From Oikopleura dioica (lineage: Eukaryota > Animalia > Chordata), in contig OU015566.1 in assembly GCA_907165135.1 (NCBI GenBank), positions 8,680,001-8,744,000 of the forward strand: a stretch of 64,000 nt of DNA, in the 5' to 3' direction. How positions within the stretch are numbered: the stretch's first letter is position 1; every line of letters starts with the position of its first letter. The notes under the pieces were generated by a model. It saw only the letters and a program-made list of their open reading frames with translations, did no database searches and was not told the DNA's origin. Made by a program: the position numbers and the translations under genes. Below are positions 9,001 to 62,678 of this stretch, piece by piece.

Positions 9001-12000
9001 TATTTAATTTTGTATTAATTTTGATTTTCTTACAAAGAGTTTTTATCAACAATTTGGAGTTTGACTGGAACAGACTTTGACTTGATAGATCTATCAAAGA
9101 GCGTGATTTGGACAAGCGCCGTATCCTGACCAGGCGCAAACTGCAGCTCGCCAGTTCCCCAATTCTGAGGCGGCTGAATTAAAAGTTTAATATTCAAAAT
9201 ATTTTCGCTCGAAGAATTCTACCTCAGCCATAGCAATTGCTTGCCATTTCAGTCGAAGACCATCCTGCGTTGATCGTCGTTGAATTTTAATTGTAGCGAC
9301 TCTTTCCGACATCTTGTAATCTCGGGCATCGAGAATTTCAATATCATTGAGAGTGTTGAACTCGACGAATTTGGAGTATCTACTCTTTCCACGCCTGTTG
9401 ATGGCAATAACTCGAGCTTTGTACATCGAATCAGGAGACAAGCCACCGATAACTGCTGTAAATTCATCGTTTGAAACGATCTTGGACTTTTCTCGACCAG
9501 TACGGAAGTCTCGAACAGCCACTTTGTACTCTCCCACGGGACCACCAAGTCTTGGCTTGCTCCAATTGATTCTGACTTCTCTGCTTGTGATATCGCTGAC
9601 GGAGATTTTGCTTACTCGGCCAGGGATGCCTGTATCGTTCACGATGGTTATCGATATTTCTGCAAGAATCTCTCCTCCAGGTTCGCCGATATACAGCGCA
9701 TTCTTCTCCTTCATTGTGATCATGTCAGCGTTAAGCTTGATCGGCAACGACATGCTTTTGACTCCCTTGTCGAAATTGATGACACCAGAAGAAAGAGGTT
9801 CAGGCTCGTCAGAGTTTGACAAATCAGAAGACTCATTCTTCGGCATATGGATGACTTTCCTCATCATGCGCCACGAAAGAGTCGTCTGGAACTCAGTTGT
9901 ATTTCGAGTTACTGTGATTTCAGCGCGTCCATCAGACGAGTTAAATTCGTAGTCAGATTTGTATGTCAAGGTTATTGCTGGCAAAGTTTTGATTCTCACT
10001 GGAAGTGGTGGTGCTTTGTTTCCCGCAGAATTACGCGCGATAACAGTGATGTTATACTTCTTGTCCGGCTCTAATTCGAGACAGCACGAAGTCACTGTTG
10101 ATGGTAAAACGTGCTCATTTCGCTGATTTTCTTTGCCTTCTTCCCAGTAGAGCACGACGTACTCACTTGGAGGTCCACCAGTTTCAGGCCTCTGCCATTT
10201 CACTTCTGCTTGCTGGTCGGCAACAAGGTTGGCAGATTGATGAAGCACCTGGCCAGGCGATTCAAGATGAGAGCCCACGTGAACTTCAGTAACAACGCAT
10301 GGACCAAGAGTATCTCGTCCAGTAACGCCGGATAGAGTCAAATTGAAGACAATTGGTTTTCCAGAAGGATCGTTTTCTACTGCCAACTGGATGTTTGTTT
10401 CCTTATCACCAGGGCGGAAGAAGGCTTTGCCGCCTTGAGGACGGTAGAGAGCATCAGATGGATTCACTGGCGTTCCAAACCATTCAACAACAGTTCCGAA
10501 CGCAGCTCCTTTCGATCTAATCAGTGCGATTTCGACGAGATCCTTGCTCAAGTCAACTTGGTAGGACTGTCGTTTGAATTCAATCAGACCCATTCCAATG
10601 TCGTTGAGAACCTTGAAATGGCAACCTCTTAGTTTGTTGTCAATAATAGCTTGTCCGGTCGGGTCTTCAAGAACAAGGTCGATTTCTTCGACAGGAGTGT
10701 TTGGATTCGGCTCCGAAGGCATTGGCATTTCAATGACAGATTCGTACTGTCCTTTTTCGAAGATAACTTTTCCCTTGACAGTATTCCACGGCGAATTGTG
10801 ATCAGAAGAGCTAACATGCCAGGGAACTTCGATGCGTTCTTGAGCTGTTTCTCGTCGAGCGACGTGTAGGAAGCAACGTTTGTTGCTCTGTTTGAATTCT
10901 AACTGGCCCTGTGTCGTTGGTTTCATGGAAACGATGCTTCGTTTTACATCATTGGCAATGTTAATTCTAGCTTGGCGTCGTCCAAGTGCAATCTTTTTGT
11001 CATCAAGTGAAATTTGAATATCGAAGGAGCTTTGCTCAGACATAACCGGGTCTTTTTCCAAGAAGATCTTGATTAATGCAACCCCTGAGGAGTCGGAAAA
11101 CTCGACGAAACCAGAGAGACTATCATAAGCTCTGCTACTACTGCTTGTTTTCCAGGCAACCGACATGAGGGCAGAAGTCTGGATTGATCTTCGGACAGGA
11201 ATTTCAATAACACCAGCAGATTGTTTGAAGAAAAACTCGCTTTCTCCAAGTTCTACCGTAATTGGAGCTAAAATATAGTTTAATTTAGAAAAACAAATAA
11301 ATAAAAATGTGCTGGTGCTAGCGTGCTTAAAACGTGATATATAATAATTATCGCCAGTAGCTCTAAAATAATAAAGAAAATAGTAATATTGACTTACAAA
11401 CATCATTCAAGATTTTCACAAAGCATTTGTTATTTCCCAATTTTGGTGTGACTTCTGAAGATTTTGGATTCGCCAAAGTAACTTCAAGCATTTCAACGGG
11501 CTCATCAATTTTCGGCTCTTGGCTAAGTGGAATAGGGATTTTGACATGATCCATCTGCTCTGGAATTTCGACTGTGCCAAAGTCGCCCTTGTCCGTCGAC
11601 CAGTCGCACTGCACCTTGCAGAATTCATATCCAGAGCGACGAACCATCACTTCCACAGTTTTGTCAGACTGCTTGCATTCCGCTTTTGAAGTTGGGAATT
11701 CAATCTTTGGTGGCTCCAAGTCATTCTCAATTTGCAAAATGACAGTGTTGCTGGTACCAGAGATGCAGGGCATGCATTCGGATTTGGCTGCGCCAGGGTC
11801 GCAAAGTGAAACAGTGACGATCGAATAAGGTTCAGCGAGTGGCTTTTGTGGCAGTTTTAGTAACACGACACCATCGACTTGGTCAGACTGGAAGGTAGCG
11901 ATACCGTCCGAATTGAGTCCTGCCATTTGAGGTGGACCATCGATCTTCCATTTAACCCAAGAGACAGTGTCGACTCGGCCAGTTCTTTCCAGTGGCAATG

Positions 12001-15000
12001 AAATAGAGCCTTGCGATTGCTTCGCCTTAATTTTTCCTGTTGATACTTTGAAGCCGACTTGGTTAGACGTCAGATCATTCTTTATCTTCACACTTGTTGG
12101 CTGTGGCACGTCAATTGTAGAAATTCCAGCGCCGATTGGTGCAAAGGGAACGAAATCAAAACATTCTTCTTCATCAGAAGTCTCATCGAGTGACAATGGA
12201 ATCGAAACAGATGCAGTCAAGGATCCATCAGCGAACTCTATAATTCCAGAGAGCTTGTCATATTTTTTGCTTTCCGATACTGTCTTCCAGGGAAGTTGGC
12301 AGGCGCCACCTGGAGCGGATCGAGTGTATGTGATGACCGCTTTTTTCTCAGACTGCTTGACGACAACAGCTGGCTGTGATGGCTTCATCTCGACTCCTTT
12401 GACATCCATGTCAACTTGAATAAGTGCCTTGGAGTTTCCAATCGCACAAGCTTGGCGGGAATCAGCAGTGTGGATATCTGCTTTGACGAGTTCGAAGTCG
12501 ATTCCGATCGCATCCAACGAGCTCGGACTAGATGGAAGGGCCAGATTAATGGCTTTCGAAGGCTCTGCATCTTTGAGCTCAATGATTCCTGTTTGAATAG
12601 GAAAGTCTGGTGTATCTGGTTTCGCGATCCATGCAACTTCGATTGCAGTCGGAATCGGGCTCTCTGATCGCGTAACTAGAATTGATGCACTTCCGGAGGT
12701 TTGACGCGCTTGAACGAGCGCTTTCGAAACGGAAACATCTATCTTCGGCAAAGCCAAATCGTAGGTTACTTTTAGCGGAAGAACACTTTTGTCGCCAATA
12801 TTGGAGCCTCGAACGGCTTCGATGGCAATTTCGATGACTTCTTCCTTTACGATCGACGGGAATTGAGGAAGCTCGATTTCAATGTCTTTCATCAAATCTG
12901 TCTGACCAAATTGCAACAAGCCTCGTAGATTGAATAATGGGCTCTTCGTATTAGGAGATGTTACTTTCCAGCCAACGAGACCTTCCGCCTGAATATTATT
13001 GCTTCTGATGATGGGAATGGCTATCTTTCCGGAGGATTGCTTAGCTTCGAATGACTTCGATTTGAATTCGAAGACTGGTAAGGGAACATCATTCATCACA
13101 GAGATTTCGTGAATAACTTCGTCGCCAAGTTCACTGACGCCTTCGACTCCAATGAGTGCAACTTTAATCTTTGTGACTGGCTCATCGAAGGATAACTGAT
13201 CAAGGTGAATTTCAATCAGTCCTTCAGAAACTCCATCGGGAATGATCATCGTCTTTGGTTCTTTTTGATCAACAGAATATGCAATTTTCATATCCCCAGA
13301 AAGATTTTTTGATCTTTTTACAGGAATTTCGACAACGGGGGTTGACTGGCGACTCACTGTTTGTTTCGGGAGGACGAAGTCAACCTTTGCTTTTGCGACA
13401 TCATGAGCGACGGTAACGTGACAAGAAAGGTCATCAACAGTTTGAGAAATCAGACCCTTATTTTCGGGAATATCGATGATTATATCAAAGTCTATGCTCT
13501 CTATCTTTTGGACATCTTTGGGAACATTTATGATGATTTCACATGTTCCATCTGCATTGATTTTCGCCTTTCCACTGAGTTTGTATCCAGGAACAGGCTT
13601 CTTTGCTTTCCAGGCGATTTCGCGACCAGCAGCAGATATGGGTGAGGTCAATTTTAGCTTGATATCGCCATCAGACTGGTTGAACTGTATGTTTGGACTT
13701 GTGAATTTGTAGGCCGGACAGTCGTCAACAACTTTGACTTTGCATTTGGGATTGTTGATGGAGACAAATGGCGCACCGGTAACCTCACGAATGAAGACTT
13801 CGTATTCCTTAACTTTGACCATGTCAATATCCATTGAGATAACAGCTTGGCTCTGATCTCCAGAGAAGATAATTTGTCCTTTCTGTTCATTTTTGAGTCC
13901 TTCGGAATGCCATGAAACAGTTATTTTCAATTTTGGCGTTCTATTGTTCGCGACGCATGTGACGGGAAGCTCCACTTTGCCAAGGCGTTTCGATGCAACG
14001 CAGATTGGATCAGAGAAATTTATCTTTGTCGGTTCGATATCGTACTCGATGTTTACAGTGGCCGCAGCTTGAGCAGAAACCATTTGATGCTCCTCTGTCG
14101 ATGGAAGAAGTTTGACCGTTACTTTTTCGGTTGTCACGGAAATCGGAGTAGGATCGAATTCCATCTCGATGTTGGCCTTGGAGCTGTGGGCATCGAAAGT
14201 GATAAATTCAGGCTTTCCCGTATTCCATTCGGAAATTTTAAGCGGAGAGCTCGTCTTGTATTCCAATTTGCAAGGCTTGGTCAAGTTGTTAAGTCGTCTG
14301 ACAGCAACATTGCCAACAGAATCTGACTGTTTGAAACTGAAATCATCTGACGAGAATTCAAAGAACGTCAAATTCATCTTGACATCAATCGTCGCGGTCG
14401 AATTATCGCCAAGGCAGGCATAAGTTCCTTTCGGCTCGTAAAGTTCGATTTCAGCATGAAACTTCTCTTTTTCAAACATTGTTTGAGCAATCGGAAGATC
14501 GAGAATATAAAATTCTTGCGTCTCATCAAATGCGAGTCTTCCTTCAGACATCTCGAAGGGATGAGTATCTGTTGTCAGTCTCCAACGAACTGATGCCAAT
14601 CCAGCAGAAGCAGATCGCTTGACTGGAATGCTGACATGATTTTCAGACTGAAGAACCGAGAATTCAGCCTGATCGAAGTCAAATCTTGCTGCTTTGAGAT
14701 CGTTATCGACGACGAATGAACAGGTCATTGGTATGACGACTTCTTCATCATTGATAGCTTCGAGCTCAACAGTGACTTCATCTTTTTTGTGATGACCAGG
14801 GGTTTGATCGAGTTCGACGTCAATTTTCTTCTTGAGCTCTCCATTGAGAAATTTGATTTCGTAAATTTTGTTGTAGAAGGGATTCGAACTGCATTTTTGA
14901 GAAAGCTTGAGAGTAGCACTTCCAGACGCGTTCCCGCTTCGAGTAATTGTAAGCTTTCCAGAACTGTCAGATTGAGTGAAAAATAGAGGTGATGTAACGC

Positions 15001-18000
15001 CAGCTTCGAATTGAAAATTGGCAGGTTTGATATCGTACACAAGCTGAACTGTACATTGCTTCTTTTCTCCAAGTTGAACTGGAGCATCAGGAATAAGTGT
15101 TACTGTGAGCTCATCGTCAGAGAGGTCAGGCACCGGTGATTGACTTATATTAATTTCTAGTGTTTGGAGCTCTTCATTTGGTTGGAATGAAAATGATCCA
15201 GTTAGGTTGTTATAAGGTGATTTTGCACCAAATTTCGAGGAGATTTTCCAATTGACATTAATGGCGTCAGTTTTAGCGTACATTCGGCAGACGGGCAAAA
15301 CAAGTTTCTTGTCCGATTGCACAACACTTGCTTTTTCCGTGGTAAAGGATACAGTAGGACGTTTGATGTCGTTGATAACAGTAACTTCAGCTGCGTGTAT
15401 AGCCCCCAACATCGGGTTGTTTTCACCTCGAGGGTCGTAAAGCTCCACGCAAAACGTGTCTTCATCCACATCTTGTGGAGCTTGTGGGAGGTCGAACTCG
15501 ACCTTGAAGAGACGACTATCTCCTGTGAACTTGGCATTTCCGGTGAGATTTTCGTAGAAAGATTTGGCTCGCGCGTTTGCAACTTTCCATGCGACAACAC
15601 ATTCTCCTTCGCCACCTCGGACAACGGCAACGGAAAAGACTTTTTCTGATTGACGGACGGTAATTTTCTCGACTGGCAGTGATGTCGTCGGTCTCGATAT
15701 GTCGTTGAGAAGAGTGACGGCCATAACTGGATGCTTTCCTAACTTAGGTTTTCGGCGTGCTGGTGAGTTCTGCTCCTCTTGGTCATCAAGAACTGGTACA
15801 GAAAGAACAACAGTGAAGATGACGTGTTCATCCGGACTTGGATCACGAGAGACAGGAATAACAATTGTTCTGTCAACATCACCAGCTCGGAAAGCAACTT
15901 CTCCTTTGATAGCGGCAAATTTTGGATCAAGTGATTTGACGTGGTACTTTGAGCTGACAGGGGTATTCAAAAAGCCAGATCGGTTTATATGAAGTGTGAT
16001 ATCGCCGTCAGACTGCTTTGCCATTATTTCATTCACCAAAAAGCTCAACATCTCAGCTTGGATATCGTTGTTGACGAAAACTTTGGCTGCATTCTTTGTT
16101 TTGTGACCTTCTGGATGATGATCGCCGCCAATTCCGCCAAGACGTAGCATGAGTTTGTTGCTTTCCGCCCAAATCGGAAAATTTGGAAGCTTGAATTTAA
16201 TCTCCGTTGTGCTTTCACCGTCGTCAATCATTTCTCGTCCGCCGACGCCATAGTAAGGAGAGTGCTCATTCGTCACGTCCAAATACCACGGAATAAGAAT
16301 TCTACCTCCCATAAATCTACTTCTAGTAACTGGCAATGAGACATCTCCATTTGTCTGTCTAACTTTTGTTTCAGTTAGATCAAGGGAAATTAAAGGCCTT
16401 GGAATATCATTTTCAATAGCTACTAGAGCCTCAGTTTGTGTCATTTCAGTGCATCGACCACCAACAGGGGGTTCCATAACAATCTTAGCGATGTTTGCGG
16501 AGAATTTTTGCGGAACTTGCACCAGCTTGAATTGGATTGTGGCTTCCTCAGATCCATCCTTCAGCTTTACCACGCCGCGTTGTCGTTCATAGAAGGGATC
16601 TAATGGGTTTTCATGATCGGCGTCCACAACATGCCATCCAATTGTCACATCACCAGTGAGATTTGGCGGGGATCTCACAACTTTGACATCCAAAACTTCT
16701 TCGCTCTGCTTACAAGAGAAGCTTGTCTTTGGCAAAGAAATGATTGTTGCTTTTAGATCGCTCTCAACGCTGACTTTAGCAAGAATATCATCACCGAGTT
16801 TTGGCAAACATGCGCCTTCAACAGCAACCAGAGTAAGGGTGTACTCATCGAGATCAATATTAAGAGGGGTCTTCGAGAAGTCGACTTTGATAAATTTCAA
16901 GTCTTCTCCATCATCAAAACGTTCCCACTTTTCTTCATTGATTCCACTTGTCGAACAAATCTGGCACTTTACCATAACAGGGCCATGTTGGCTAAAATCT
17001 CGCTTGATGGGAACCATGAGATGATCATCTGATTGTCGGCACGTAAAGTCGATTTTGTCGAAAGAAATAACTGGGATTTTGACATCCTGGGAGACAACGA
17101 TTTTGAAGTTAGGCTCTTCAATTTCCGTCATCAATCCACCTCGAGCCTTTTCAATTTCAATGATGTAAGTAGCTTCGAGAACTTCCGATGGTGTCATATC
17201 GATTGCGATTTCGACTTCTTTTTCATCAGCATCATCTGCGTCAAAGAAGACGACCCCTTCGATTGGTCGGAATCCGGGAAGATCAGCTGAGATTTTGTAG
17301 GGAATAGTCACACAATCTGCAGAATTTCCTGATCGAACAATCTTCATTTTGATGGGACCATCAGATTGTTTGGCAGTTTCAGGCTTGATCACGGCGATTT
17401 TGGTGGGCTTGACATCGTGAATAATGTCGATCTCAACATTTTTACATTCTAGTGTCGGACAGCTGAAACCTTCAACATTGTCCATCGAGATAACAATCTT
17501 CCCCATATCACCAGAAAGTGGAACATCAGGAAGAGGGACCTTAAAGTCCATTTCTTCTTCGCCATCTTTCATGATTATTGATCCTGTGTGTCCGTCAAGA
17601 TCACCGCCGAAAATTGAATAGTTTGCTTTGAGCTCGCCTTCGAGATTACCGAATCGTTTCATAGTAAAATCAGCATGTCCAGAAGATTGCAGTGCCTCTG
17701 CTTGCTTTGATTTGACCTCCACGTGACTTCGTGGCAAATCATTGTGCACTTGGAAAACAGCTTCTTTCTTCGGCAAGTCAAATGAATGATCGCTTATGAT
17801 ATCAGTGATGATGACTTTGTAGTTGTCAACATCGGTGTATCGAGGAATGGTTTCAACCGGAATTGAAAAGCTGGCTTCAACTTGTCCCGGAGCAAATGAC
17901 ACTTGAGTTGTGAGGATTTCTTGATTCTCTAAGACGACTTGAGCACTTATGGTCATTGGACAGTCGGCGAATCCTTTACGCAAAAGTGCAACTGGAATTG

Positions 18001-21000
18001 ATCCTGCTGATCGGACAACCATCTGCTCCAATTCGATCACTTCTACCGCGGATGGTTTGATGTCATTCTCCACTGTCATCGTCAAATCTGGCTGCGAGCC
18101 TATCTTACAAACGTCATTCTCTCGGTCAAGACAGACTTGGAAGGTAGAAAAGCTTTCACCGATCGGAATTTTTGGCAAATCAAACTCAATATATCCAAGT
18201 GATTGTCCATCGCCGAAGTTGACCTTTCCTTTGAGCGCAGAAAATGCTGGATGGTCAGATTTAACATACCAGTCAACAGAAACCTCCTCCCGCATGTTCG
18301 TTGTTCTAGCTACAGGAATACGAACGCGTTCAGCACTCTGCTTCAAGTTAAGTTCTGGGAGATCAAAGCTTGCTTTTGGGAAAAGCACGTCTTGCACAAG
18401 ATTGACTGTGCATTTGATATTGTCACCGAGAAGGAAATCTTGATCTTCATCAGCTCCAAGAAGTTGCAATTCAAGTTCAAGCGATTTCGCTGCAGAGGGT
18501 TTCTGGCAAACAGCTAGCTCAATGAATTTTTGATCTTCGCCGATTTCGAATTCCAGAGTTCCAGCATCTTTGCGCCAGTCTCCGGCAAAAAGTCGCTCGC
18601 CATTTTCTCGCCAGCTAACTTTGATTGCATTTGCGGTTCCATCTCGCTTGACTGGGATTTTAATAGTTCCATCGGTCTGTCGCGCTGTCAGCTTTGCATT
18701 AGAAAACTCGACAATTGGCCACTGAATGTCATTCTTGACAAGAATTTCTAGTCTATTTGGATCTCCGAATTCGGCATCGCCGTCAAGGCCAAGAAGCTCA
18801 AAAATATATTTCGCGTCTTTTTCTTTCATCGGATGCGTGGGAAGATCGATGACAATGTCTTGGTCGAAGTCGCCGTCTTTGAAGTTGGCTTGGTATTCTT
18901 TCATGAAACTTTCATCGCCAAGATGCGTCTCACACTGCCACCGAACAGTTGCGTCTCCGAATTGGAATCCGCTACGCTCAAGTTTCAGCTTCAACTGCTT
19001 GTCAGACTGTTTTGGTTCATCTGTTTGAACGGAGAAACCGATCTTTGCCGGTTTGATGTTGTTCTCGATTCTTATGTGGCAATTGAGAAGCTCGCCCAAC
19101 ACTGGTTGAGTGACGGGGTCAAGAATGATGTCGAACTCGGCCTCGTTAGCGCCTTTTGTGACGAGTGGCGATGTGAGGATAATTGACGCTGTGGACTCGC
19201 CAGGATTGAAGACGAGTTGTCCATGGAAATCCTAGGAATGTCACTTTCATCACATGGTGGCCAACTTACCTTGTAATCTTGTCCATTCGACTTTGGGTCA
19301 ACTTTCCAGTTCACGACAACTGGGGCGGTCATCTCCGACGATCGGAACAAGGTAATTTTATGAACACCATCTGATTGCTTGAATGTAAGAGACTTCTCAG
19401 CAAATCCGACTTTTGGCCATCCTAGAAGAGAAAATTAACTTAGCCATCTTTAGAATTGATACACAGCACCACATGCTCCTAACAAGTCAAGAAAACTCGT
19501 ACACACGTACGAGTTTTCCATATCAAATATATTTTCGAATCTTTCGTTCAATAAATTGAATATTCAGCTGGGACTCACGAGCTTTATATTCGAGAAAGAT
19601 AGAAAATAGCAGAAAAAGTCTTGATAATTTATTCTCCTTCGCGCTTGCCCTTCTTCCTGATAGAATTAGTAAAGTCACTAAAATACACCACTTCAAGAAA
19701 TTGATATTATTTTGAAACCACAAATCTTCTGCTGACAATGCTTATTTGCGTCCTTTTATCCTGCTTTTTGATCATATAATGCTACTGCTCAGTTCGAGTT
19801 TTTTGACATTTCATAAAAACTCCCGACTTATTATCATAACCGTGGTCATATCATAGTAGTAGCTAGACAGCATCAAGTTAGGAAGTGATCACCACATGCA
19901 GAATTTTCGAAAACACCACTACGAACTTACAGTGATTCCCCATTTTCATATCGTTTTGAGCCATCAATCTTCAACTTGTGTCTTCGTTGATTTCAAAACT
20001 GACCGTTCGGTGCATTTTTTGTAAAAAATCATAGTGCCCTGCTGTGTCTGCATAGTGTGATTTTTGTGCATTGTGTAAGGTTTTAGTAAAGAAAGCAAAG
20101 AATGCCGAAGTTAGAATTTTGTGAGTAGCTGGAGGAAATTTTGAATTCAAAAATTTGAAAAGATGTTGTGTCAATAACTCACTGATGTCGTTTTCGATCT
20201 TGACTTCTAAGCGCTGCTCGCCATTCTGAATTTGAAAATGGTTTCCTTCATGTTCTTTTTCGGTGCTTTACCTTCAGTCGAGCTCCTCCCTTTGGTCTAT
20301 CGAGGACAATGAAGAAAGACTCGTCTGGGAACTCTTGTGGCTCGGTCGGTAGATCAAGGTGGATCCACAGCTTTGTCTCTCCAGAAGCAAAATCAAGCTC
20401 TCCACTTATTCCCTTGTAGGCAGTATCTTAATTCGGTAAGTATGATGATTAAGTTATAAAAGAACATACGTGTGCTGGAGAAGGGTTGAAGTCTCCAAGG
20501 CTGGGTAACATCTCCATCACTGACTTGTGTTCGGACAACGCAAACGCTCAACCGTCCATTTGATTGTTGTTCAATTTTAGGAAGAGGATCGTAGAAGGCA
20601 ATTTCTCCAGCAGCTAAAACTCTTTTAAAACTGTACTTTGAATATTTTACAAACTTTTATCATTGAGAAGAGACACGGAACACTGAGTTTTGTCGCCGAG
20701 AGAAGCATTGATAGGTTGGTCGAGAGTGATTGTGAACTTTTCCTCTGAGTTGTCCTGTGGCATTTCTGGAACATTGATAGCAAGATCAAGACCTTCATCG
20801 CCACTTCTGAATTGGGCAGTTCCAACAAGACCTCGGAAATATGATCCTTCGGGAGCATCGACTCGCCATTTGACTGTCGCTTCTTCCAAGCATCTTTCAT
20901 GACGCAGAAGTCGTACAGTAATATTTCCATTTGACTGGAGCTGTTTTACAGACTCATCACTAAATTCAATGACACCAGGACCGAGATCATTGTTGAGTGT

Positions 21001-24000
21001 AACGTGACACTTTCCTCGTCGATCTTCCAAATCATAAACGACTCCAGGTTTGAGCTCAACATCGAACTCTTCCACAAGTGGCGTGCCAGAAATATACATT
21101 TGCTTAAATGGAATTCGCACCTCGTCAAATTCCTGTCCATCAGCAAAGTTGAGAACCCCACTGAGTGGCTCGGGAGAGGTGTACGCAATCCAAGGAACAG
21201 TGAGATTTTCCTTGTTCGAAATTTTTCGCTTGACAATGAGAATCAGTTCGCGAGTAGATTGATTAGCGTTGACCTTCGTCTCCATATATCCAATCGTTCG
21301 TTTAGGTGAGAGAATTGTCAACCTGTGTTGGTCGTTGTCACCAATTCTGACGCCATTATTCGACTTGAGCAGTTTGACGAGAAGACACTGAGACTGACCA
21401 GATGGGATGTAGGAGATAGGGATTTCAATAGGAATGCGTTGAAGACCAGCCGGTACTTGAATCGTGCTAACAAATGCTTCAGCGAGCTCAGCTGCGACAT
21501 TCTGATCTACAGAAACTGGGAGAAGCTGGTACTCAAGGTCAAACTCCACCCGATTTCTGCCATCAGAAAGTGCGAGAACTGTTGTCATAACGTCAGTATC
21601 GTGAACAAGAATTTCACTGGATTCGTCGTCGAAACCCACTCGACCACCTTCGAGGTCATTGTGGACTCTAACGGTCAGGCTAGGGACTGGACCAAGTTCA
21701 GCTTTTCCAACAGGTTTGTGCAGCTTGATTGTGAATTCTTCGATAGGAACATCTGATGGCTGACAGTTCAGTGGGAAGTCGATGTGAGTTTCCGATTGGC
21801 CATCATCAAACATGATTTGGCCATTATTTCTGTCATACCAATTATCAGATGAGACAGACCAGCCAACCGGTAAAGCACCGCGATTTCCTCGCGATCGAGT
21901 TAGGGGCAATTGGACAATTTTGTCAGACTGAGAGACTTCCAAGAAGTCTTGAGTAAAACTGACTTGTCCGGGATGCCCAGCTGGAGGAATTGTTATAACA
22001 CAAGAGTCCTTCAATCCAATTCGTCCTGGTCCAGTCGCGACCAGAAGTGATAGTGTGAGGGATACAGGTTCTTCAAGGGGTGCATCGAGCAGATTGAGGT
22101 TGATGACTTTACGGGACTCATTCGGTTTGAAAACGAGCTGTTCAGATTGAGTAAGATAATGTTCGCCTGGTTGAGCAGTATCTGGCTGAGTAGCGTACCT
22201 CAAGGACACGAGATCTTCGAGCTCGCCTTTTACAATAACACCGACGGCAACATCAATTGCGCCGATGTCAGTCGTGATGAAGTCGGTTTCAAATTCAAAC
22301 TCAACGTCTTCGCTCTCTTTGAGGACAGAAATATTTGCCATATTTCTAGCGCCAATAAGGCCATCAGAACATTTGAAAAGCTGAACACAGAATGACTCTG
22401 TATCGGACTTCATTTCCTTGTCGATATCAATTTTTATGATCTGCTCGTGAACTCCTTCGGCGAAAACGATTTCACCAGAGAGGCCATCGTATTTCTCGAG
22501 ATCAGATGAAGCAGACCAGTCAACCTTGACCTCTCCATCAGCACCTCCTTGACGAGCGACAGAGAGATCAATTTGGCCATCATTTTGGCGACAAACTGCT
22601 CGTGTCTTTCTGAACTCGAAGGATCCAGGTTCATGACCACTGATGACTTTGATGATGGCGTCAGGGTATTTTCCCAGCGAAACTGCTGCTTGTCCGCTAA
22701 TCGGTTCGATTTTTACGGAAAGTGACTTGTTAATAAGCAGTTCGAGCATTTCGGTAGGGATTTTCAAGAAAGAGCGATTCTTTGATGCAGCAAATTCAAT
22801 TGAACCAGAAGTTGGGAAGCCTTTTCTTCAAGCATGTCAGTGTGGTCTACAAATGACCACTTGATCTCAGCAGGCTTCTCCAGCGAGCCGATTCGAAGGA
22901 GCGGAAGACCCTGATCACCAGATTTTGCCATGAAAGAAAATTCAGGGCGAGCGAAAGAAATCGAGCAAGGAGCTTGATCAGTCAAGAGTTGAATCGAACA
23001 TGTTTCCTGACCAATTTTACCCATTCCAGAAACGGAATCAATCTTCAATTGCATCTTTCGCGAAACCATCTTTCCATGATTGCCAGGAATGAATGTGATT
23101 GGCACAGAAGCTTGGAACTGTCCGTCTTCGAAGAAAACCTTTGTTCCATCTTCGAACTCGTAGTGAACCTGATTCACTGCCGAGTCTCCGACAGAGCTAA
23201 GTTCTATCTCCAGTGGTCCGTCGGTGCCTCCGTGTCGAAGGATATGAATGTTTTGCTGAATGTCGGCGACTGGGAAGGTCACTTCTGGAACGCCGAAGCC
23301 AACAGTGCCAACGTGTCTGTCATTGATGACATTGACAACAGTTTCCGTTAGATTGCCACCAGTTGTGTTTGGACCATAATCGGAAAGAGAATGTTTTAGG
23401 AGAATTTGTTCGCAGTCCATTAATGGCAGAGGTAGAGTTAGTTCTTTTTGAGACTCGTTAGGTTCAAAGCGAACCTCAACAGGGATCAACTCACTCTCAG
23501 GAAGAATCGAGCCTTCAATTAGCTCTAGATGAATAACACAAGAGGCCTGGCGGTCTTCTTTGCCGATTCGCTTGACAGTCAAAGTATAAGTTTCTTCCGA
23601 AAGTCTGCAAAGATGCTTTTCTTGAGTGAAAGAAATCTTCGCACTATTGCGCATGGCGCCTCTGACATTTTGCTGTCGGACAGCTTCGATTGGATTCGTT
23701 ATCAAGATTTCTTGAGAGTCGCGAGTTACAATGACGGAATCAGAAATTGGAATGATTTTGCAGGTGAAGATAAGGTCATCATTAGTTTCGTCGTCGATCT
23801 CGTCGTCGACGAAAATCTTGACTTGCTGGAGAGTCTCGTTAGCATCAAAGATGACTGCCTTCTTAACAGCAGAATAGTGATGATCTTCTGCTTTAGCAGT
23901 TCCGTCGATAGTTTCAAACAGAACGACTGATGCTTGAGGAGGATCCAGGCGGATTTTTCGCTCCAAGTTTACAATTAATGGAGACATTCCAGCGCCGCGA

Positions 24001-27000
24001 AGAATTGTTGGGTTGACAACGTTTAGCTCAACTTCATCAAAATGTCCTTTTCCGTAGATTTTGACGTTTGTCGATCGTTGATGACCAAGACGAGCATTAT
24101 TCGTTGGCTGCATCAATTCGATAATAAGATTTGTATCTTCTTCTCGGTCGACATTCACATTCAGATCGATCGCGCCATCGATTTCCATGTTTTCAAATAC
24201 TAAGGTGCCCGAAGTTGTGATCTCGTCGGGAACTGAAGAGCCATCTTGTGTTCTAATGACCCATGGGAGTTTGACGGTCCCGTCGGCACCCATCGATCTC
24301 ATCACAGGAATAATGGCTGCCTCTTTGCCAGCTTTAAAGACATAATTGCTTCGCGCAAGCTCAAAACGTCCCGGGTCGTCGTCTTCGATGATCTTAATTT
24401 CACAGTTGTTGAGTTCCATCTTTGTTCCATCAGATGGCTCGTAAAGCTCGAGACCAAAAGTTCTTCCTTCTTCAATGTATCGATCGTTTTCAATAATGGA
24501 AACTTCAATGAGTTTCTCAGTTTCTCCATTCGCAAATTCTAACTCGCCCTCAACTGATTTATAGTCAACCCCAGCCCTAGCGGTAATATCTCGAGTTCTG
24601 TATCGAACTGAAGATCTGCCTTTTGTTGATCTTGTTCGGATAACTGGAACAGCTGCTTTCTGGCAATTTTCTAAGAATGGATAGGACTGTCTGAGGAATT
24701 GAACAACAGATACAGTCTCGTCATATAGAAGAGTGACCATGCATCTGTCGCAATCGAGAGTAGCACCGCCGAGAGGATCAAAGAGTTCGAGGTTGAATGC
24801 TTTTTCACGGCCATCAAAGATAGAGTCTTGGAAGAACTCGATCTCGATGACTTTTGAGGTTTCGCCGTCTTCGAAAATGATTTCACCTGATGTTTGTCTG
24901 TAGTGCTGGCCACCAATGGCGGTCATATCTCGAGACTTGTACGAAACAACAACTCGCCCGTCGATACCATTGGCACGGTGAATTGGGATGAGCGCAGAGT
25001 GGTCCGCCTCTTTGAAGACGTACGAGGGCTTGGCGAAACCGACGGAGCCAGGCTCGTCGTCTTTGATAATAATTACTTTCGTGCGCTTCTGTCCAAAGTG
25101 AACTTCCTCTGGTCGATCAATTAGCTCCACGATAAAAGCTGCCTCTCGGCCTTCAAATTGAGGGCCTTTGATGTCAATATGGATGTCTGCGAATTCTTCT
25201 CCATCTTTCCACTCGATTTGGCCCTGGCCCCAGTTTGTCTTGCTCAAGAGTCGTTCCATCTCTACGGAGTTTCCATCGCCTCTAGCGAGCGAGCTTGCCA
25301 GAGTACCACTTTCTCCTTCCCGAATCAGTCGGAAATCATCATCCGCCACGGAGACAGGGAAGGTGCGCCATTTGATAGACAGATTGCCATCAAATACAGA
25401 TCTTCTCACTGGAATTACAGCTACTGTTTGCGAGCGTTTCATGAAATATTTGGCTTTGATGAACTCGACGAGGTAGGCGATCGTTGGGAATCTAAACATT
25501 TTTTATTGTTTGTTTGTCCTTCAGAAAAATTTTATCCTCAAATTCGAGAATTTTCGGAGGCATGTTAAAATTGTCTTTAATCATAAGGATTGACAGTTGA
25601 TTTGGACAACATTAAGGACCAAATCATATAATCAACAATTATTTTATGGTGTTTCACATGATATCTGTCAAAAAATATTTTCGACCAATAAGATTGCGCG
25701 ATTTTCAAAAAAATAAAAATTTTTTTTGGTGAAATTTTTAAAATGACTTGCCTCTTTTCGCGGTCAACGCAGAAAACGCAAATTCTCCAGCAGCACAAGA
25801 ACAGTAGCCCGATCAAGAGAGCAGCCAAAACCGCCCATAGAATAATGATAAGAGAGTATTCGATTCCGCAATGAGGATCGTCTTCTGCCCAAACTTGGAT
25901 ATCGCCATTATCTTTCTCGTAATATTTGTAGTAAAACTTGCATGGTGGCTCTCCTTCTCTAGCTTGAGTCATTGCAGAGCAGAGCTGGCCAGCTTCAGAG
26001 GAGTATTTTGCCGTTTTATCATCTCCAGCTGGGACAAGCTCTGATTTACCAACGAGTGTATACGTAATCTCTGAGTTATCAGACTTCGGGCAGACATCGT
26101 CGCAGTCTTCTTTATCGTCAGAGTGGTACTTACACTCGATACAAGCAGAGAAAGTCTTACAGTTGGCGCACGGTTTTCCTCCGCAATTTCTTGTATCACA
26201 AAAAGGACCAGTCCAGTCGTCCGATTCGCAAATGCACTTTCCACACTTGCATTCTCCTCGACCGGAGCAAATTTCTGCGAAGCTATCAGCCCTGCAAGTT
26301 TCCTGAGAAGCCGGACACTCGCAGAAATCTCCCGTCCAGCCCTTATCACACATACATTTAGAAATCCCTCTGCCGTCGTATTTATCGCACACGCATTGGC
26401 CATGATCGGAGCAAATACCGGGCTTGGTTCCATCAGCTCCGTCGTTGTAGCAGTCAGTATTTGAGCACTGACACCACTTGCCAGAGATGATTCCCGACTC
26501 GATTTGATTGCACTCGCAGAAATTCTTCGGGCACTGTCCTTGGCCGGAGCAAATTTCTGTTGGCATTTCTGGATTTATACAATCAGTACAGTTTTGTCCT
26601 GGGGTAGGACAGGGCGGCCGTTCGAATTCGCACACGCTCCCAAAGAAAAGATCGTGGCAGAGACACACGCCGCAGGCAAAGTCGCCGTTTCCGGAGCATT
26701 TGATCGAGTTGGCTTCGATTTGCTCCATGCAGTCGAAATTGCATCGGATAGTTGTGTTGATGAGAAGAAAATCGTCATATCGCTGAGTTCGAACTTTCAA
26801 CTCTCCCCACTTGCTTGTAGTTCTGCAGGTATCGGAGCAGTAAGTATCAGGGTGAACCGATTGACGAATCGTATACTGAACGTTGCTATTCTTGCTCAAC
26901 CCTGTGACATCCTCGCCGTCGGTGAACTCCTTAACAACACCCTGTGCGTCAGTGAAAACAGCTTCAGTTCCAAGACAAACATCCTTCGCGTCAAGAAACT

Positions 27001-28373
27001 CTTTTGTGTTGAGCACCAAGTGTTGTTTTTGTGTAATAATGTTGTAAGCCTTTTCAATAAGGTCAAGGATATTCTTTGACTTTTCCTCCAAAATCTCAGC
27101 GGAGCCAACTTTAAAAAGCTGCTCAGTGGCGTTTTGGTAATGATGAAGCTGGCCTTTTCGAACGGCAAAGATCGGAATGATTGAGTTTTCTTCGAGAACA
27201 TCGACGACTTGCTTGATGGTCGGATAATCGCGCTGGTCACCACGGATGTATTCGTTATTTTCAAGATGACATTGATCATCAGCCGGGTCGATCAGACCTG
27301 AAAGCTTGCCCATGCCACTTCCGCCTGAATGGAACCAACTCTCGGTCGCCAGAACGAGGAGCTTGAGTGTGTTGTGCTGCCAGCCAACTTCATCTCGGCA
27401 AAGAACAGCTTGATACATTGCTTCAAGAGCGCCCTCTGGTCCATCGAGATTTCCAGAAACATGCTCGTTCTGCATATTCTCCGTATATTTGGTGATGTCG
27501 TCGGTGAGTGGGTTCACATTCTTGTACAAAAACGGGGAATCGACTTCGAAGTTGTCCCTGTACGGTTTTTCCAAATAAAAAGGTGTCATTTCCGTTTGAG
27601 GTGAGATGACTTAGATAGATGCAAAAATGTGTATTTCCCAAGATCTAAATATAATATGTAAAAAGTCTAAATTTTGCATCATTCCTTTATCCACAAAAGT
27701 ACCGAAGCCGATTCTCACCATTGCTTCTTGATTTGTGAGCTCTCTCAGCTTCTTCGCAATTTCGCCTCCCATTTTCTTCATGCGTTCCATATCATCACGC
27801 ATCGAATAAGAAACATCCATAAGATAGTAAAGTTCGGCTGGATAAATTCGCGGTTCGGTGACATTGAAGAGCAAGTCTACACTGTCGCCAACTCGGATGA
27901 TGGCGTTGGCGTCCTTAGGGAAGATGCGGTCTTTCTCGGGGTTGAAATCGGCATTTCCAGTGTAGACCTTCGATTCCACTGTCTAAAAATAACCATGGTG
28001 AACCTATTTTATTGGCAGGATAAATGATAGTGTTAATGTGCTCTTTACGAGTAGAGAAATTAATGTGCTTAAATACCTGAACATCTTGGCACTTGAGGGT
28101 TTCGAGATTAGCTGGTAGGTCGCAGCGACCGTATTGAAAAGACTCATCGGCGCACCAGCCGCAAAGTTCGTTTGCTCTGATGCAGTCGCACGGATTTTTA
28201 GCGATGTGGCATTTCGTCTTGTGATTTTCTGCACCTACCCATCCCTGAAATTTGCCGCACTCCGCCTGGCCCCGACTCGTCTTCTTACTGTTCTCTGTCT
28301 GTGACTGTAGTTGCTCGGCCGGTGCGGCAGCTGCTAGGCATCCAAGAACGATGCCCAGCCAGTGCAGGATCAT
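6066..28373 (-). CDS. ITGB4: Giant integrin beta subunit, beta4-like: PSI, vWA/betaI, EGF, TM, then about 40 or more Calx-beta and 4 FN3 domains (about 6,500 aa)
   Basis: Signal peptide at 28373, PSI domain (CGWC), MIDAS YYLMDVSYSM, and beta4-type features DKVISPQTEM, GNLDGPEG and LATES. Cys-rich EGF repeats precede a TM followed by CCWRICVFC. Phase-compatible introns join ORFs 25577-27589, 22764-25499, 20647-22767, 11363-19102, 9187-11406, 8088-8810 and 7122-7915. The last FN3 pair resembles ITGB4 FN3-1/2 (PSKPSRLAF..GEIT..VENL..YRYTVRA). One frameshift near 22823. Last exon SPYRVRREKQQPMESSDSE*. Confidence 0.8.
10260..25491 (-). repeat. Tandem array of Calx-beta (NCX CBD-like) protein domains, about 110-120 aa each
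   Basis: Recurrent pattern (V/I)xF....QS...IPVxR..G...VxW.....GxxxFxxGE..K.I.I.L......F.V.L....LG.....V.NDI over about 4,700 aa. The repeats are divergent at nucleotide level. Confidence 0.88.
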
Positions 28374-53544: not shown

Positions 53545-54249
53545 ATGGCCTTCAACAGCATCAACATTGAAATCCCATCTGTCGACTTGACCGACCTCGA
53601 CTTTCTCGCAAGTCTTATTTCTCCTGAAATAGCTTCTGCATCTCCGACCGCTTCGCCAATTTCTCCTGCATCTTCCGGCTACGCTTCGGAGCTCTACGCG
53701 ACTTCATCCACTGGCTCAAGCTCGCCAACATCGACTTACTACTATCCATCCCCCGCTCAATATTCTTCTTACGATCCTTCTTCTACTCCAACTGCTACTC
53801 CTTCTTACTACCGACCAACAAGTCAATATTTCTTCCCAACAACGTTCACCCACGCCATCGCTCCACCATCAGCTCCAGCAACCTTTGACCCAGCGATTCT
53901 TCAATCAAGCATGACTTCGTTTCTCGCTCAAGATCACTCACCGGTCTACGGAGACAAACCATTGACCATCGAAAAGTCGGGCCTCAAAAATCGACGCGCT
54001 TCGCGATCAAAGTGCCCCTGTCTCAAATGCTGCCACGCTCGAGCTAACCACATTCCTTCACCAACTTATCATGGCTGCATCGTCAAAGGCTGCCAAAAAA
54101 CTTACACTCGACCAGCTCATCTTCGAAGTCACCTGAAGTCACACGACAACGATTCCCATCTGAAATGTGTTATTTGTTCTGAAAACTTCATGACTTCCGA
54201 CATGCTCATTTCCCACATGTTTGAGCATGGTCAAGGAATGAAACTGTAA
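53545..54249 (+). CDS. Divergent Sp-like zinc-finger protein, copy 1 (intronless; Btd box plus 2 C2H2)
   Basis: S/P-rich N-terminus and KCPCLKC (Btd box). Finger 1 is CIVKGCQKTYTRPAHLRSHLKSH, and finger 2 is CVIC..HMFEH. Confidence 0.8.
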   Translation: MAFNSINIEIPSVDLTDLDFLASLISPEIASASPTASPISPASSGYASELYATSSTGSSSPTSTYYYPSPAQYSSYDPSSTPTATPSYYRPTSQYFFPTTFTHAIAPPSAPATFDPAILQSSMTSFLAQDHSPVYGDKPLTIEKSGLKNRRASRSKCPCLKCCHARANHIPSPTYHGCIVKGCQKTYTRPAHLRSHLKSHDNDSHLKCVICSENFMTSDMLISHMFEHGQGMKL

Positions 54250-55161
54250 TTCGATAAATCAATTCTCTGTAAATATCTCTGTATTAATTTGAATTAAACA
54301 TGAATCAAAAAAATTTAACAACAGTTGTTTCTTTTGTATTTTTAGTATTCTTTAAAAAAATACTATTTGATAGTTTTACCCTTCAAAGTGATATTTATTA
54401 TAATACAGTCGTCAACTGATATAAAAGGCGATAATGAAAAAACTAGGAAGCAAGAAATATATAAAAAAAAAAATCAGTTTTTTATTCAAATTTTTGCTTG
54501 CATCAGAGGGATTTTCATTTATAAAATTGTTATTTTTAATGAAATAGAAAAATACTTCTTACTTGTGTAATTATTCATCCACAAGCATTCATGTTCAACA
54601 GTTCAAGCAGAGTTTTGTCTATTGTAGAAAACGCGTCGAGCCCACGAAAATCAAGTACAGATGGACAGTCTGTGAGTTAAATTTATGAAATCTATATTAA
54701 TGAACTCATAAGGTCAAGCGATATATTCCACAAAAGAACTTCCGAATGCGCAAGTATTCGGAGGAATAGATTAATAATGAAAACCCGCGATTCTGTCAGA
54801 TTAGGTGGAGAAATGAAAATACCACAATTTCCTAAATTAAGAATTAAGATATTTATTCAAGAAAAATATTGATAACGTGCCCAAAAATGTCTAATACTGC
54901 CAATAATTTCAGTTTTAATTTTGCTTGAATGTTTTCTGCAGAAAAGGTAGACTCAGACGCAACTAAAATCTCGATCATGATTCCTGATAATTTCCAACAG
55001 CATTCGCTAACAGCTTCGAGCTTCACCTGTTTCTAATCAAGACATGGCAACGCTCTTGGAGCGCTAGAACGCATAACCACCTGTCTATCGCAATAAATAT
55101 TGAGCCGTGATTCCACGAAATCATAATCACAAAATTGACAAACAAAAAACAACTCGCAAAA

Positions 55162-55902
55162 ATGACCTCTTCTTCCGACAGCTTCGAGAATATCACGTTT
55201 CAATTGCCCGTGGATGAACTTGGCAACCTGGAATTCTTGGCCGGACTTATCAGTCCCGAACTAAGCTCTCCGGATAGCCAGCAACTTCTACCAAGTCTGG
55301 AGTGTCCAAGCTCCTCTGGTTACAACTCAACATGTTCTTCTGCAGATTACTACTCTTCTAACACTTCATCTTCTAATTCCTCAACTTCTGGATCCTCTGG
55401 ACTAACTCCACCACCGATAGAAGGTTTCTACCACCATCCGTCTCCCACCCCTTATTCGCCTTATCCGGCTTACTATCCTCCAGCAAATCAGCAGTTCTTC
55501 TTTCCCGAAAACTTCTCTCCAAATCAGCCTGCTTCTTTTGATCTCCAAGCCTTCCAATCGTCTATCAACTCCTACCTCCAGTCTGCAGAAATCCCTTCTC
55601 AAAACGCTCCCAACCTTCGAATGGAAAAATCGAAACTCAAGAATCGCCGCGCTTCCCGATCAAAATGCCCCTGCTTCAAATGCTGCCACGCTCGTGCCCA
55701 TCAAATTCCGTCACCAACTTACCATGCCTGCATCGTCAAAAGTTGCCAGAAAACTTATACTCGCCCTGCTCATCTGCGCAACCACCTCAAATCACATGAC
55801 AACGATGGCAGACTTCAGTGCGAAATTTGTTCTGTAAATTTCATTTCATCTGATTTGCTTATTTCGCACATGTTTGAACATGGGCAAGAAATGAAAAACT
55901 AA
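55162..55902 (+). CDS. Divergent Sp-like zinc-finger protein, copy 2 (tandem paralog)
   Basis: The C-terminal half is nearly identical to copy 1 (LKNRRASRSKCPC.KCCHARA..YH.CIVK.CQKTYTRPAHLR.HLKSHDND). The N-terminal L.FLA.LISPE motif is shared. Confidence 0.8.
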   Translation: MTSSSDSFENITFQLPVDELGNLEFLAGLISPELSSPDSQQLLPSLECPSSSGYNSTCSSADYYSSNTSSSNSSTSGSSGLTPPPIEGFYHHPSPTPYSPYPAYYPPANQQFFFPENFSPNQPASFDLQAFQSSINSYLQSAEIPSQNAPNLRMEKSKLKNRRASRSKCPCFKCCHARAHQIPSPTYHACIVKSCQKTYTRPAHLRNHLKSHDNDGRLQCEICSVNFISSDLLISHMFEHGQEMKN

Positions 55903-56102
55903 TATTGAAATTTTTAGTTTCTGTAAATATAACATGTTACATTATAAAGATTAAAACATTTTGTCTCTTTTGATTCAGGACTCCCTCTAGCAGCGCTCTG
56001 GAGACAATTGATGCCCCTATGGGAATTCAACTTTATCTTTTTAAATAGGCAGAGCTTTCTGAAGTTCATAAATCAGAACGGCTCAAAAGAGATTTAAAAA
56101 GT

Positions 56103-56393
56103 ATGACAAGGATATGGATATTTTCGCTACTTATGTCAGCTCTAGTCAGCGCACAACACTGGAGCTACGGTTGGCATCCGGGTAAGAGTAATTCTTGAGG
56201 ATAGAGAGAAACAGTCTTTTTAGGAGGAAAAAAGAGAGACCCCGCTTTTGCTACCGGAAATGTAGATCCCGAATACAATCACAGATTCGAAGTAAACCCG
56301 AAATTTTATGGAAGAATCAGACCGAAAGGAAAATCTGCCAAATATCTTGCCTACTCAATGCCTATCTTTGACGATTTCTTCGACATGAAATAA
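56103..56393 (+). CDS. GNRH: Gonadotropin-releasing hormone precursor (82 aa)
   Basis: Signal MTRIWIFSLLMSALVSA, then QHWSYGWHPG, GKKR and a 51-aa associated peptide. A 42-nt GT-AG intron at 56182-56223 splits the Gly10 codon. TAA at 56391-56393. Confidence 0.92.
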
Positions 56394-57933
56394 CTTTTGG
56401 TAAGAAACCGACGAGCATATTTTCTTAAACAAATAAATACTGACAAAAAGATTTTAGAAAATAAGGAATTTCGCGATATTCCGCTCTGGAATATGATCTC
56501 GTTGGCAATTAGCGACGAGTATCGGCTAATCTTAGTAGCGCGGGCGCGGAAATCTCGCCAGATTTACTAAAAATAACCCTCGTTGATTCCAGCCGCCGCA
56601 ACTTTCCGCCCAAATTTCCAGCAAACTATTCACTTACTATTCCTCGATTTAGATCCAAGTCTTCTCCAACTGCAGTGCAGCTTCGACAATTTACGGCTAT
56701 TTCGACGTTTTATACCTTATTAATACCTATTTTCATCTGAAACTATACTCAATGAATAAAATATCTTAAATTTGTTCTCGGTTTACCCAATTGCCAAATT
56801 TGACCTCATTCTTGCATCAAATATTTATCCGAAAATGAGTTTAACGGAGCTTAATTTGACTCTGTCGATACATTTTCCTCAAATCATATTTTCTTTTGTG
56901 ATTGCTTTTGCGAAAATATCCGGCAAGCGCGTTATCCACCATAAAATTACTCAAAAACAAAAGCTCTATAAAGGCCCTTTGAGGACTAATCCGCTGGCCT
57001 AAGTCCGCGTTTAATCGCTCGAGGTGCAGCAAAGCCAGCAGCAGCTTTCGAGGAGGAGCAAAATCAAAGGCGAACGCGAAAATGCCGACTTAAATCGGAC
57101 ACAGCTAACCGATCGGTTTTCACTCTTCAAATGCACAGGACCTGCTCCTGGCACGCGACGAAACAATTGCTTAATCCTCTCTCACCTGAGGGTTTCGCAC
57201 ACTGCTTGATCAGTAGATTCTATCCCTGCCCACAACCAACAACACTGTTTCTTCCGTACATGTACAGAATGTAATGAACATATGAATTTTTAATCTATGC
57301 GGTTTTCTTGGGATCAGATTGGTTTTCATTCTCGGGCAATTAATTTGTGATAGTTTGAATTTCCCTTAGACGATGAATTTTCTATGATAAAAGATCTTTA
57401 AATCTGATAATAAGATGTTGATTAACTTTTGAAATTTAACTTTTATAACAAAAATGATCGATGTTCACTTGAAATTCTTATAAAACATTTTTACTGAAAA
57501 ATAGAGGCATTTCTTAATAAAAAACTTTTTCTAACAAAATGAGTTTTGTCGAAAATAAGACGAATTATATAATAATAACGTTCAATGGCGTATCCCGTGG
57601 CACCACAAATGCTGTCCGATGGTGCTCGGTCTAAGTCCGTCTGGTGGCGCTGGTGTTCGGTTACTGGATTGGGCGAAAGTGTGTGTTCTTGGTGGTGGTG
57701 TCGGGTGCATTCATCAACTCAATTTGGCTATACGACAACAATAATCATTTTACGGAAGATAGACTCGACAATCAGCTGGAAGACAATCTCGGCAGAGTAG
57801 AATCTGACCTTCACATTTGATCGGTTGATCGCGAGATTGTGCAATCCAAACCAACGCGGCCAAGAGATAAGAGGAAATTGAAGAAGCCGCAAGGAAGCTC
57901 GAGTAACGGTGTAATAGAAAGACAGAGAAAGTG

Positions 57934-59863
<1,930 letters not shown>

Positions 59864-60653: not shown

Positions 60654-61222
60654 TTATGACTTCTGGGACGAATGTGTTCGACGATGCTTTGCAAGATGAT
60701 CTGATCGCATGAATCTTTTACCGCAAAAGTCGCATTTGAATCGTTTCTCGCCCGTGTGAGTTCGAATATGTCTCTGCAGCTCGTCTGATCGAGTGAAGCT
60801 CTTGCTACAGTAAGGCCAAGCACAGCGGAACGGGCGCTCTCCCAAATGCCAACGAATATGCGCCTGAGGTTGATTTGAGAATAGATGGGAAAAATTATAA
60901 CTACCTTTAGATGAGAAGTTTTTCCATAGACTTTATCGCAGTCTGGAAAAGGACAGTTGTGTTCTCTTTTAGCCCCGATCGGAAGAATTCGTTTTCCGTT
61001 TCGTTCATCTGTGCAGTTTGGGCACTGGCATCTGATGCATCTTCTTATCGGGGGTTGTATCGTAGGTATGGCTGAATCGAATGAAAATCAAAAACTTTCT
61101 TCGAAATCAAGGAAGACTACTCTTCTAATACCTGTTGCCGTTGACGGAGTAAGTCCGATAGGGAAGTAGGAGGCGATCTGTCTCAAAATAGCAACTTGCT
61201 GGAGATCTGCGGAAGTGATCAT
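60654..61222 (-). CDS. Compact canonical Sp-family (Sp5/buttonhead-like) zinc-finger factor
   Basis: Btd box [10 protein letters not shown]. Three fingers: [31 protein letters not shown] and [10 protein letters not shown]. Two short introns; about 160 aa. Confidence 0.92.
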
Positions 61223-61480: not shown

Positions 61481-61995
61481 TCAGGCGGTCTTCCAGTAGA
61501 GAGTGTTGATCAGGAGACGCATGTGAGGCAGAGCTTTTTGGTAGTGTTCCACTGTCTGGTTATGGCTCTCAGTCATCTTTTTGATTTTGTGTTGGTAGCT
61601 TGAGACGATCTTCCTAAGTTTTTCTGAAAGAAGAATTATTTTTTAATTTGGTGGAGAAAACTTACTGATTTCTTGATCTTGGTGCTCTTCAATACTCAAA
61701 GTATCCTTCTTTCCGGACTGTTGATTGTTATTTGAATCGGATGGTGTCAACCGGATGCTCCAAGTGCGGGCATCAATGTTTCTCCGTCTAAAATGTTGAT
61801 GAAGATCTAAGAGGACTAATAAATTGTTCACCTGTGCTTTTTTCTCTCCCGTCTGAACCAGTAATCGACATATTTAAAAGTCAGCTGCAGTTCTTCAGCG
61901 AGAGCCTCTCTCTTTGCTGGTGCTGGCGAGGGATTTATCTTGAAGAAAAGACGTAGTTTTCGAAGTTGGTCCTCTGTGCATTTGTACTGGGACAT
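61481..61995 (-). CDS. Atypical homeodomain protein with a helical C-terminus
   Basis: MSQYKCTEDQLRKLRLFFKINPSPAPAKREALAEELQLTFKYVDYWFRRERKK. Two GT-AG introns lead to ..KKLRKIVSSYQHKIKKMTESH..YWKTA*. The homeobox exon is missing from the ORF track. Confidence 0.8.
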
Positions 61996-62678
61996 TTTTT
62001 CTCACTGATCTGATCATACCTTCCGGCAAGAGGCTAAATAGCACTCGCTTGTCCGAAAGAGGGCGCTCTTCGATGCATCACCTGCGGCGGGTGAGCCGCC
62101 TAACTAACGTAGTCGAAAATGCACATCTGATAAACTAAGCTAGACGAAATTTCCAAATCAAATAACTGAAACTAATTGATTCTCTTCTCAACTTTTTGAA
62201 CGGATTTTGAATCCGGGATTCCGTTGGTAGCGCTTGGCGTTCAGGGGAAATGAGTCTGATTATAAACTTTCAAAATATTTACGCCAGCGTAAAACTCTGA
62301 GAGACTCCTCTTGTGAAAGATAAGAAAAAAACAAGATTCAATGAAATACTTGCATTTAATTTTCATTTTAACATCGACCGTAGATTCTCGCAGATTTCAG
62401 AGATTTGCGTCTCGCTGCATCAGGAAGAGATTCAAAATTGAATGAAAGCGAGAATAAAGCTTTTGATGAATTTCAACAAAAAGGCGGCAAGATCATGAAC
62501 GCCAAGTTGCGTGTTTTTGCAGAACCAAAAGTTTTTATCTATCATTTTGTTCATCTGCAGAAAATCATGGATTCTTAGCCATGAAGGGCTTTCAATATCT
62601 CAAAGAAAACTAAAAGATTAGAAAAAGACCATATTCTGTAGCCCCAAAAAAGAAGCTTCAAAAGACAACGGTATTCAC

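Follow-up and report, generated by a model that had tools for sequence, protein, structure and literature searches.

Does the 64,000-nucleotide stretch of Oikopleura dioica DNA analysed here (hereafter the window) hold a GnRH gene, and is that gene likely to be functional? The original prediction described a signal peptide, the decapeptide QHWSYGWHPG, a G-KKR site and a 51-residue GnRH-associated peptide, with a reading frame broken by a 42-nt intron that splits the Gly10 codon. Translation found all of these elements in place (Table 1), and the unspliced frame runs into a stop five codons past Gly10. The precursor coding sequence totals 249 nt, i.e. 82 amino acids and the stop. The length of the intron keeps the frame, yet it contains stop codons; its size is ordinary, since the median O. 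dioica intron measures 49 bp (PMC8008620, which reports 19 scaffolds for OKI2018_I69_1.0). The signal peptide, called from hydropathy and conservation, shows zero to three amino acid changes in other lineages.

Table 1. Features of the GnRH gene and its downstream neighbour, in positions of the window
Feature	Position	Strand	Remark
Start codon ATG	56103	+	GnRH gene
Exon 1	56103-56181	+	79 nt
Signal peptide, 17 aa, V-S-A end abutting Gln	56103..56153	+	mean Kyte-Doolittle 1.94, residues 5-16
QHWSYGWHP, GnRH codons 1-9, and first base of Gly10	56154..56181	+	third-position changes only, 9 sequences
Intron, 42 nt, GTAAG...TTTTAG, phase 1, codon 10 = G/GA	56182..56223	+	RNA joints in X1, X5, X6
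Exon 2	56224-56393	+	170 nt
Remainder of Gly10, Gly11 (amide donor), Lys-Lys-Arg cleavage site	56224..56237	+	predicted processing
GnRH-associated peptide, 51 aa, and stop	56238..56393	+	length kept in other lineages, 4-18 aa changes
Probable 3' UTR	56394..56760	+	AATAAA at 56432 and 56755
Six1/2 homeobox gene, direct downstream neighbour	58496..59863 (approximate ends)	+	linkage in two other species

The motif is short and its Pfam GnRH match barely exceeds the cut-off (19.6 bits against 18.5), which leaves room for a chance match, a pseudogene or vertebrate contamination. However, Q-H-W-S-Y-G-W-x-P is expected by chance only 1.5e-7 times per window and 1.5e-4 times per genome. The pattern Q-H-W-S-x4-P has exactly two matches in the genome searched (O. 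dioica, Okinawa; 64,281,565 bases, 19 contigs) and its reversed control none. The neighbouring DNA is collinear over ~9 kb in another lineage (L058), and a fish GnRH3 recovered by the same scan (L064) has no intron at that position. Spliced RNA and purifying selection, both described below, contradict this explanation and already refute it; we give it a vanishingly small probability. Other matches were indeed fortuitous. A third Pfam GnRH match in the genome (L003) runs antisense to another gene and has neither a signal peptide nor a cleavage site, and 11 of the 16 metagenome pattern matches lack both signal and cleavage sites. The broad Q-H-W-S pattern gave 363 uninformative matches.

The original prediction stood or fell with a spliced transcript, and RNA of two studies shows the exons spliced precisely at the 42-nt intron. 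Reads on 55000-57200 carry a joint that skips 42 nt between GT and AG in three of the four runs (X1, X5, X6), the fourth, a single-cell run (X2), having zero reads. In detail, a single study on a diverged lineage supplies 14 and 4 raw reads across the joint from two poly(A) libraries; these connect the exons at the same ends, and their changes in the peptide codons (56156, 56171) are silent only. The joint is also spanned by a marine metatranscriptome contig, 99% identical, with a depth of 3.1 and 21 bases on its short side. This RNA support is modest, coming from two studies with unstranded libraries and raw reads of a diverged lineage. An apparent skip between 56323 and 56653 was rejected as an intron, the reads there running on into a diverged tail of the L058 type. 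A block near 56653-56679, in the probable 3' UTR, is conserved between lineages and present on exon 2 reads of the diverged lineage. Splicing across codon 10 restores Pro-Gly-Gly-Lys-Lys-Arg. That the gene is real and expressed seems to us close to certain.

Orthologues on marine metagenome contigs from near and more distant O. dioica-like lineages (L006-L010, L056, L058) encode the same peptide and cleavage site, with a 46-nt intron in the same place. Their tails have 4 to 18 changes in 51 residues relative to the gene in the window, and the peptide is invariant where the tail differs at 14-18 of them; O. dioica lineages diverged ~25 million years ago (PMC11067885). Similarity searches were run for each exon separately, unjoined. 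A word-index search with exon 1 returned zero candidates (no vertebrate precursors), and an exhaustive search with the same exon recovered the same nine residues in two further species (L068-L071 and L075; L072-L073). Among nine sequences compared, six positions vary within the peptide, every one a silent third codon position. Judged from this invariant peptide, its silent-only changes and the variable tail, the hormone is under purifying selection. The shared intron, short introns and a shared neighbour suggest that the two further species are probably other oikopleurids. Their contigs (L068-L073, L075) show a second intron, in the precursor tail.

The original prediction called the precursor single-copy. 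This is correct in that each precursor carries one peptide, but the genome contains a second GnRH gene on the minus strand (G000:C5:1135207-1135233; L044:4772-5275), which encodes a decapeptide with Ser10 and corresponds to GenBank model CAG5109654.1, carrying no gene name. The phase-1 intron position is identical in all orthologues and in this paralogue. Ser10 is retained through a different codon in L062, which has Tyr5 rather than Phe5. The two O. dioica precursors show weak similarity in their tails, at 36% across 45 residues (E 0.002). On the minus strand of a 1.2-kb marine contig (L061:543-571) we observed a further GnRH-like peptide that has Phe5, Trp7 and His8 and runs into a lone Gly before Lys-Arg. 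Its signal peptide may be broken by a GC-AG intron that contains a palindromic repeat.

Both other species have the intron at the same position, and the sole acceptor that restores the cleavage site leads to Pro-Gly-Lys-Arg or Pro-Gly-Lys-Lys-Arg, with one Gly; their predicted product is a nonapeptide with a Pro-amide end. Across the group, the genes encode Gly, Ser or nothing at position 10, the very codon that the intron divides. We take the intron to be an appendicularian gain whose acceptor bases decide how the peptide ends, which would account for Gly10 in this gene, Ser10 in its paralogue and the absence of a tenth residue in the two relatives. Could the main product of the O. dioica gene itself be the nonapeptide pQHWSYGWHP-amide? 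A second possible acceptor, TAG-GAG, is formed by the first three bases of exon 2; its use would drop one Gly and yield an in-frame P-G-K-K-R, as in the related species with one Gly only, and a Pro-amide nonapeptide GnRH exists in amphioxus (PMC10321317). However, the joints listed for RNA on 55000-57200 are of the 42-nt type only, none skipping 45 nt to the acceptor three bases downstream, and the orthologues L006-L009 have no second AG (G/GC), which makes the two-Gly form their sole option. We consider the nonapeptide very improbable as the main product and retain the decapeptide.

How does the decapeptide compare with known GnRH systems? The encoded peptide would conform to the chordate consensus, with pGlu1-His2-Trp3-Ser4, Gly6 and a Pro9-Gly10-amide end (PMC7697785). 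Its precursor has the chordate order of signal peptide, peptide, Gly with a dibasic site and associated peptide; as expected of a chordate GnRH gene, it is transcribed and spliced to an open frame, with a receptor-type gene in the same genome. Ten residues and one peptide per precursor, directly behind the signal peptide, are common to it and the vertebrate GnRHs. Nine of ten residues are shared with teleost GnRH3 (salmon GnRH), the single difference being His8, as the original prediction stated; the likeness lies in the peptide alone, and no GnRH3 orthology is assigned. GnRH1 and GnRH2 each share eight of ten, and His8 appears in no chordate form tabulated (PMC5592718).

Gene structure sets O. 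dioica apart. In vertebrates one exon encodes the signal, the peptide and the start of the tail (PMC5732264), whereas here the intron lies in codon 10; the intron within the decapeptide, claimed to be unlike vertebrate genes, thus departs from the known deuterostome structure, in which the peptide occupies one exon and the first of two coding introns is in phase 0 (PMC5732264, PMC10321317). Amphioxus GnRH (YSYSYGFAP-amide), like that of O. dioica, is a single peptide behind a signal peptide, and its Pro-amide end resembles that of the nonapeptides predicted from the two relatives, but it lacks pGlu-His-Trp, and of the two introns in its gene the first falls in phase 0 (PMC10321317). Since Oikopleura shows intron turnover, such an atypical exon pattern is in itself little surprise.

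Ascidian tGnRH-1 to -11 (Ciona, Halocynthia) share the decapeptide consensus with O. dioica, and Halocynthia tGnRH-10 and -11 have eight of ten residues in common with the new peptide. Trp7, present in O. dioica, occurs in none of the 11 listed ascidian decapeptides. Ascidian precursors, including that of Styela (XP_039266993), carry several peptides each, whereas both O. dioica genes encode one copy per precursor and thus lack the tandem copies of ascidians. The original prediction was right about several ascidian peptides per precursor, but its description of them as more divergent does not hold generally, Halocynthia tGnRH-11 being one residue from GnRH3. Ciona and O. dioica have two GnRH genes each. 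Among the proteins gathered, P0005 (L076) and P0006 are tandem precursors with seven and four GnRH copies, with Phe7-Ala8, and the one of these two that comes from Styela clava is annotated merely as an uncharacterized protein. Others were set aside: P0001-P0004 and P0007-P0010 are prokaryote-style miscalls from unspliced eukaryotic DNA, and P0013 is an unrelated antiporter, wrongly clustered.

The cephalopod 'oct-GnRH' (pQNYHFSNGWHPG-amide) ends in the same five residues, G-W-H-P-G-amide, as the O. dioica peptide, but has twelve residues and a different N-terminus. It is regarded as corazonin-type, and the corazonin system was reportedly lost in tunicates and vertebrates. The match probably reflects an old G-W-x-P-G motif together with convergence at His.

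Maturation of the O. dioica hormone would follow the known pathway. The signal peptide would be removed ahead of Gln, a convertase would cleave after Lys-Lys-Arg and a carboxypeptidase would trim the basic residues; Gly11 would then be converted to the amide by an amidating enzyme and Gln1 would cyclise, giving pQHWSYGWHPG-amide. The genome contains a PAM/PHM-like amidating-enzyme gene and ~8 convertase P-domain loci. A search for GnRH receptors, suggested in the original prediction, yielded one GnRH-receptor-like GPCR gene as the sole candidate from the motif search (G000:C2:2983413-2984937, minus strand). Judged on similarity, exon by exon, its TM2-3 and TM6-7 exons have GnRH receptors as their best PDB matches (E 3e-10 and 2.5e-4). 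No close paralogues were found in the genome with either exon, these counts being lower bounds. The receptor gene (L043:1914-3933, minus strand) has many short introns, a long second extracellular loop and a divergent-looking TM4, and lies on a 12.96-Mb contig that we take to be possibly an X-specific region.

Two ligand genes face one receptor candidate in O. dioica, whereas Ciona has four receptors for six peptides. It might be argued that the peptide is made but uses another receptor, the GnRH-receptor-like gene serving the Ser10 paralogue or being an orphan, all the more as Ciona receptors are ligand-selective and one Ciona peptide is an antagonist (PMC7697785). QHWSYGWHPG, however, is nearer to the chordate consensus than the Ser10 peptide, and no second receptor candidate turned up in the genome, where the counts are lower bounds; we hold such a division to be most unlikely. 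We favour release of the decapeptide from neurons and action through the single GnRH-receptor-like GPCR. The target would be nerve, muscle or gonad directly, because tunicates have no pituitary gonadotropins (PMC3969558). Taken as a whole, the locus is very likely a functional GnRH neuropeptide gene with a predicted decapeptide-amide product and a candidate receptor.

Six1/2 follows the GnRH gene in the same orientation at a distance of ~2 kb, and this arrangement is kept in both other species (L068, L069, L071, L072). The outer neighbours differ: in the species with longer contigs an EGF/spherulin-like gene lies upstream and an arrestin-like gene (so labelled from its translation) downstream, as against zinc-finger genes in the window. 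GnRH and Six1/2 have stayed together through a change of neighbours on either side, in a lineage whose gene order is known to be scrambled (PMC11067885). O. dioica lineages resemble one another in the intergenic DNA, and the two other species share long conserved non-coding blocks there; no conservation was detectable from one group to the other. Elsewhere in the window, two divergent Sp-like C2H2 zinc-finger genes precede the GnRH gene (53545-54249 and 55135-55902, plus strand), one of which is seen in L058; an Sp-type gene and a homeobox-like exon lie beyond Six1/2 (60657-61087 and 61831-62001, both minus), and a very large integrin beta-4-like gene with an integrin beta head, many Calx-beta repeats and fibronectin III domains occupies 8088-27589 on the minus strand.

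In O. dioica the primordium of the ventral organ, a proposed homologue of the olfactory placode, expresses Six1/2 (PMC7776563). GnRH and Six1/2 might be co-regulated, but it is just as possible that the GnRH gene sits in the Six1/2 regulatory region as a mere bystander. A broader scenario, which we offer tentatively and think rather doubtful, would have the larvacean gene keep the ancestral tunicate-vertebrate state (one peptide, Gly6-Trp7) that ascidians changed, regulatory DNA shared with Six1/2 drive both genes in placode-like sensory-secretory cells such as those of the ventral organ, and the lineage-specific intron let acceptor shifts reset the C-terminal residue from species to species.

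GnRH is already known from every tunicate examined and was to be expected in this one, so that the O. dioica gene is expected in kind but new in sequence and gene structure. Also new are the predicted single-Gly form of two other species, which makes residue 10 Gly, Ser or none according to the acceptor, and the Six1/2 linkage in both of these species. In keeping with the claimed novelty, QHWSYGWHPG was absent, in any of the spellings tried, from the literature searched, which lay outside subscription journals; within the same scope, the publications consulted among those naming both Oikopleura and GnRH yielded no report of the gene and no description of a single-peptide gene, an intron within the hormone or Six1/2 adjacency. 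The precursor was also absent among database proteins of 30-96 residues, a range that excludes longer, fused models. Reviews draw tunicate GnRHs from ascidians only, with tandem copies as their hallmark, and two GnRH reviews leave Oikopleura unmentioned.

The larvacean single-peptide form with Trp7 implies that tandem copies are not universal in tunicates. If larvaceans branch first among tunicates, a position that is debated, it would support a common ancestor whose precursor was already vertebrate-like. Residue 10 has been termed essential for vertebrate receptors, and its variation here constitutes a natural experiment on the co-evolution of ligand and receptor. The GnRH-Six1/2 pair offers a direct way to test whether GnRH cells originate in the ventral organ, which is Six1/2-positive. 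O. dioica, with its two ligands and what appears to be a single receptor, provides a simple system for studying the role of GnRH in a pituitary-less chordate, and the gene described here is an entry to the function and origin of GnRH in a minimal chordate.
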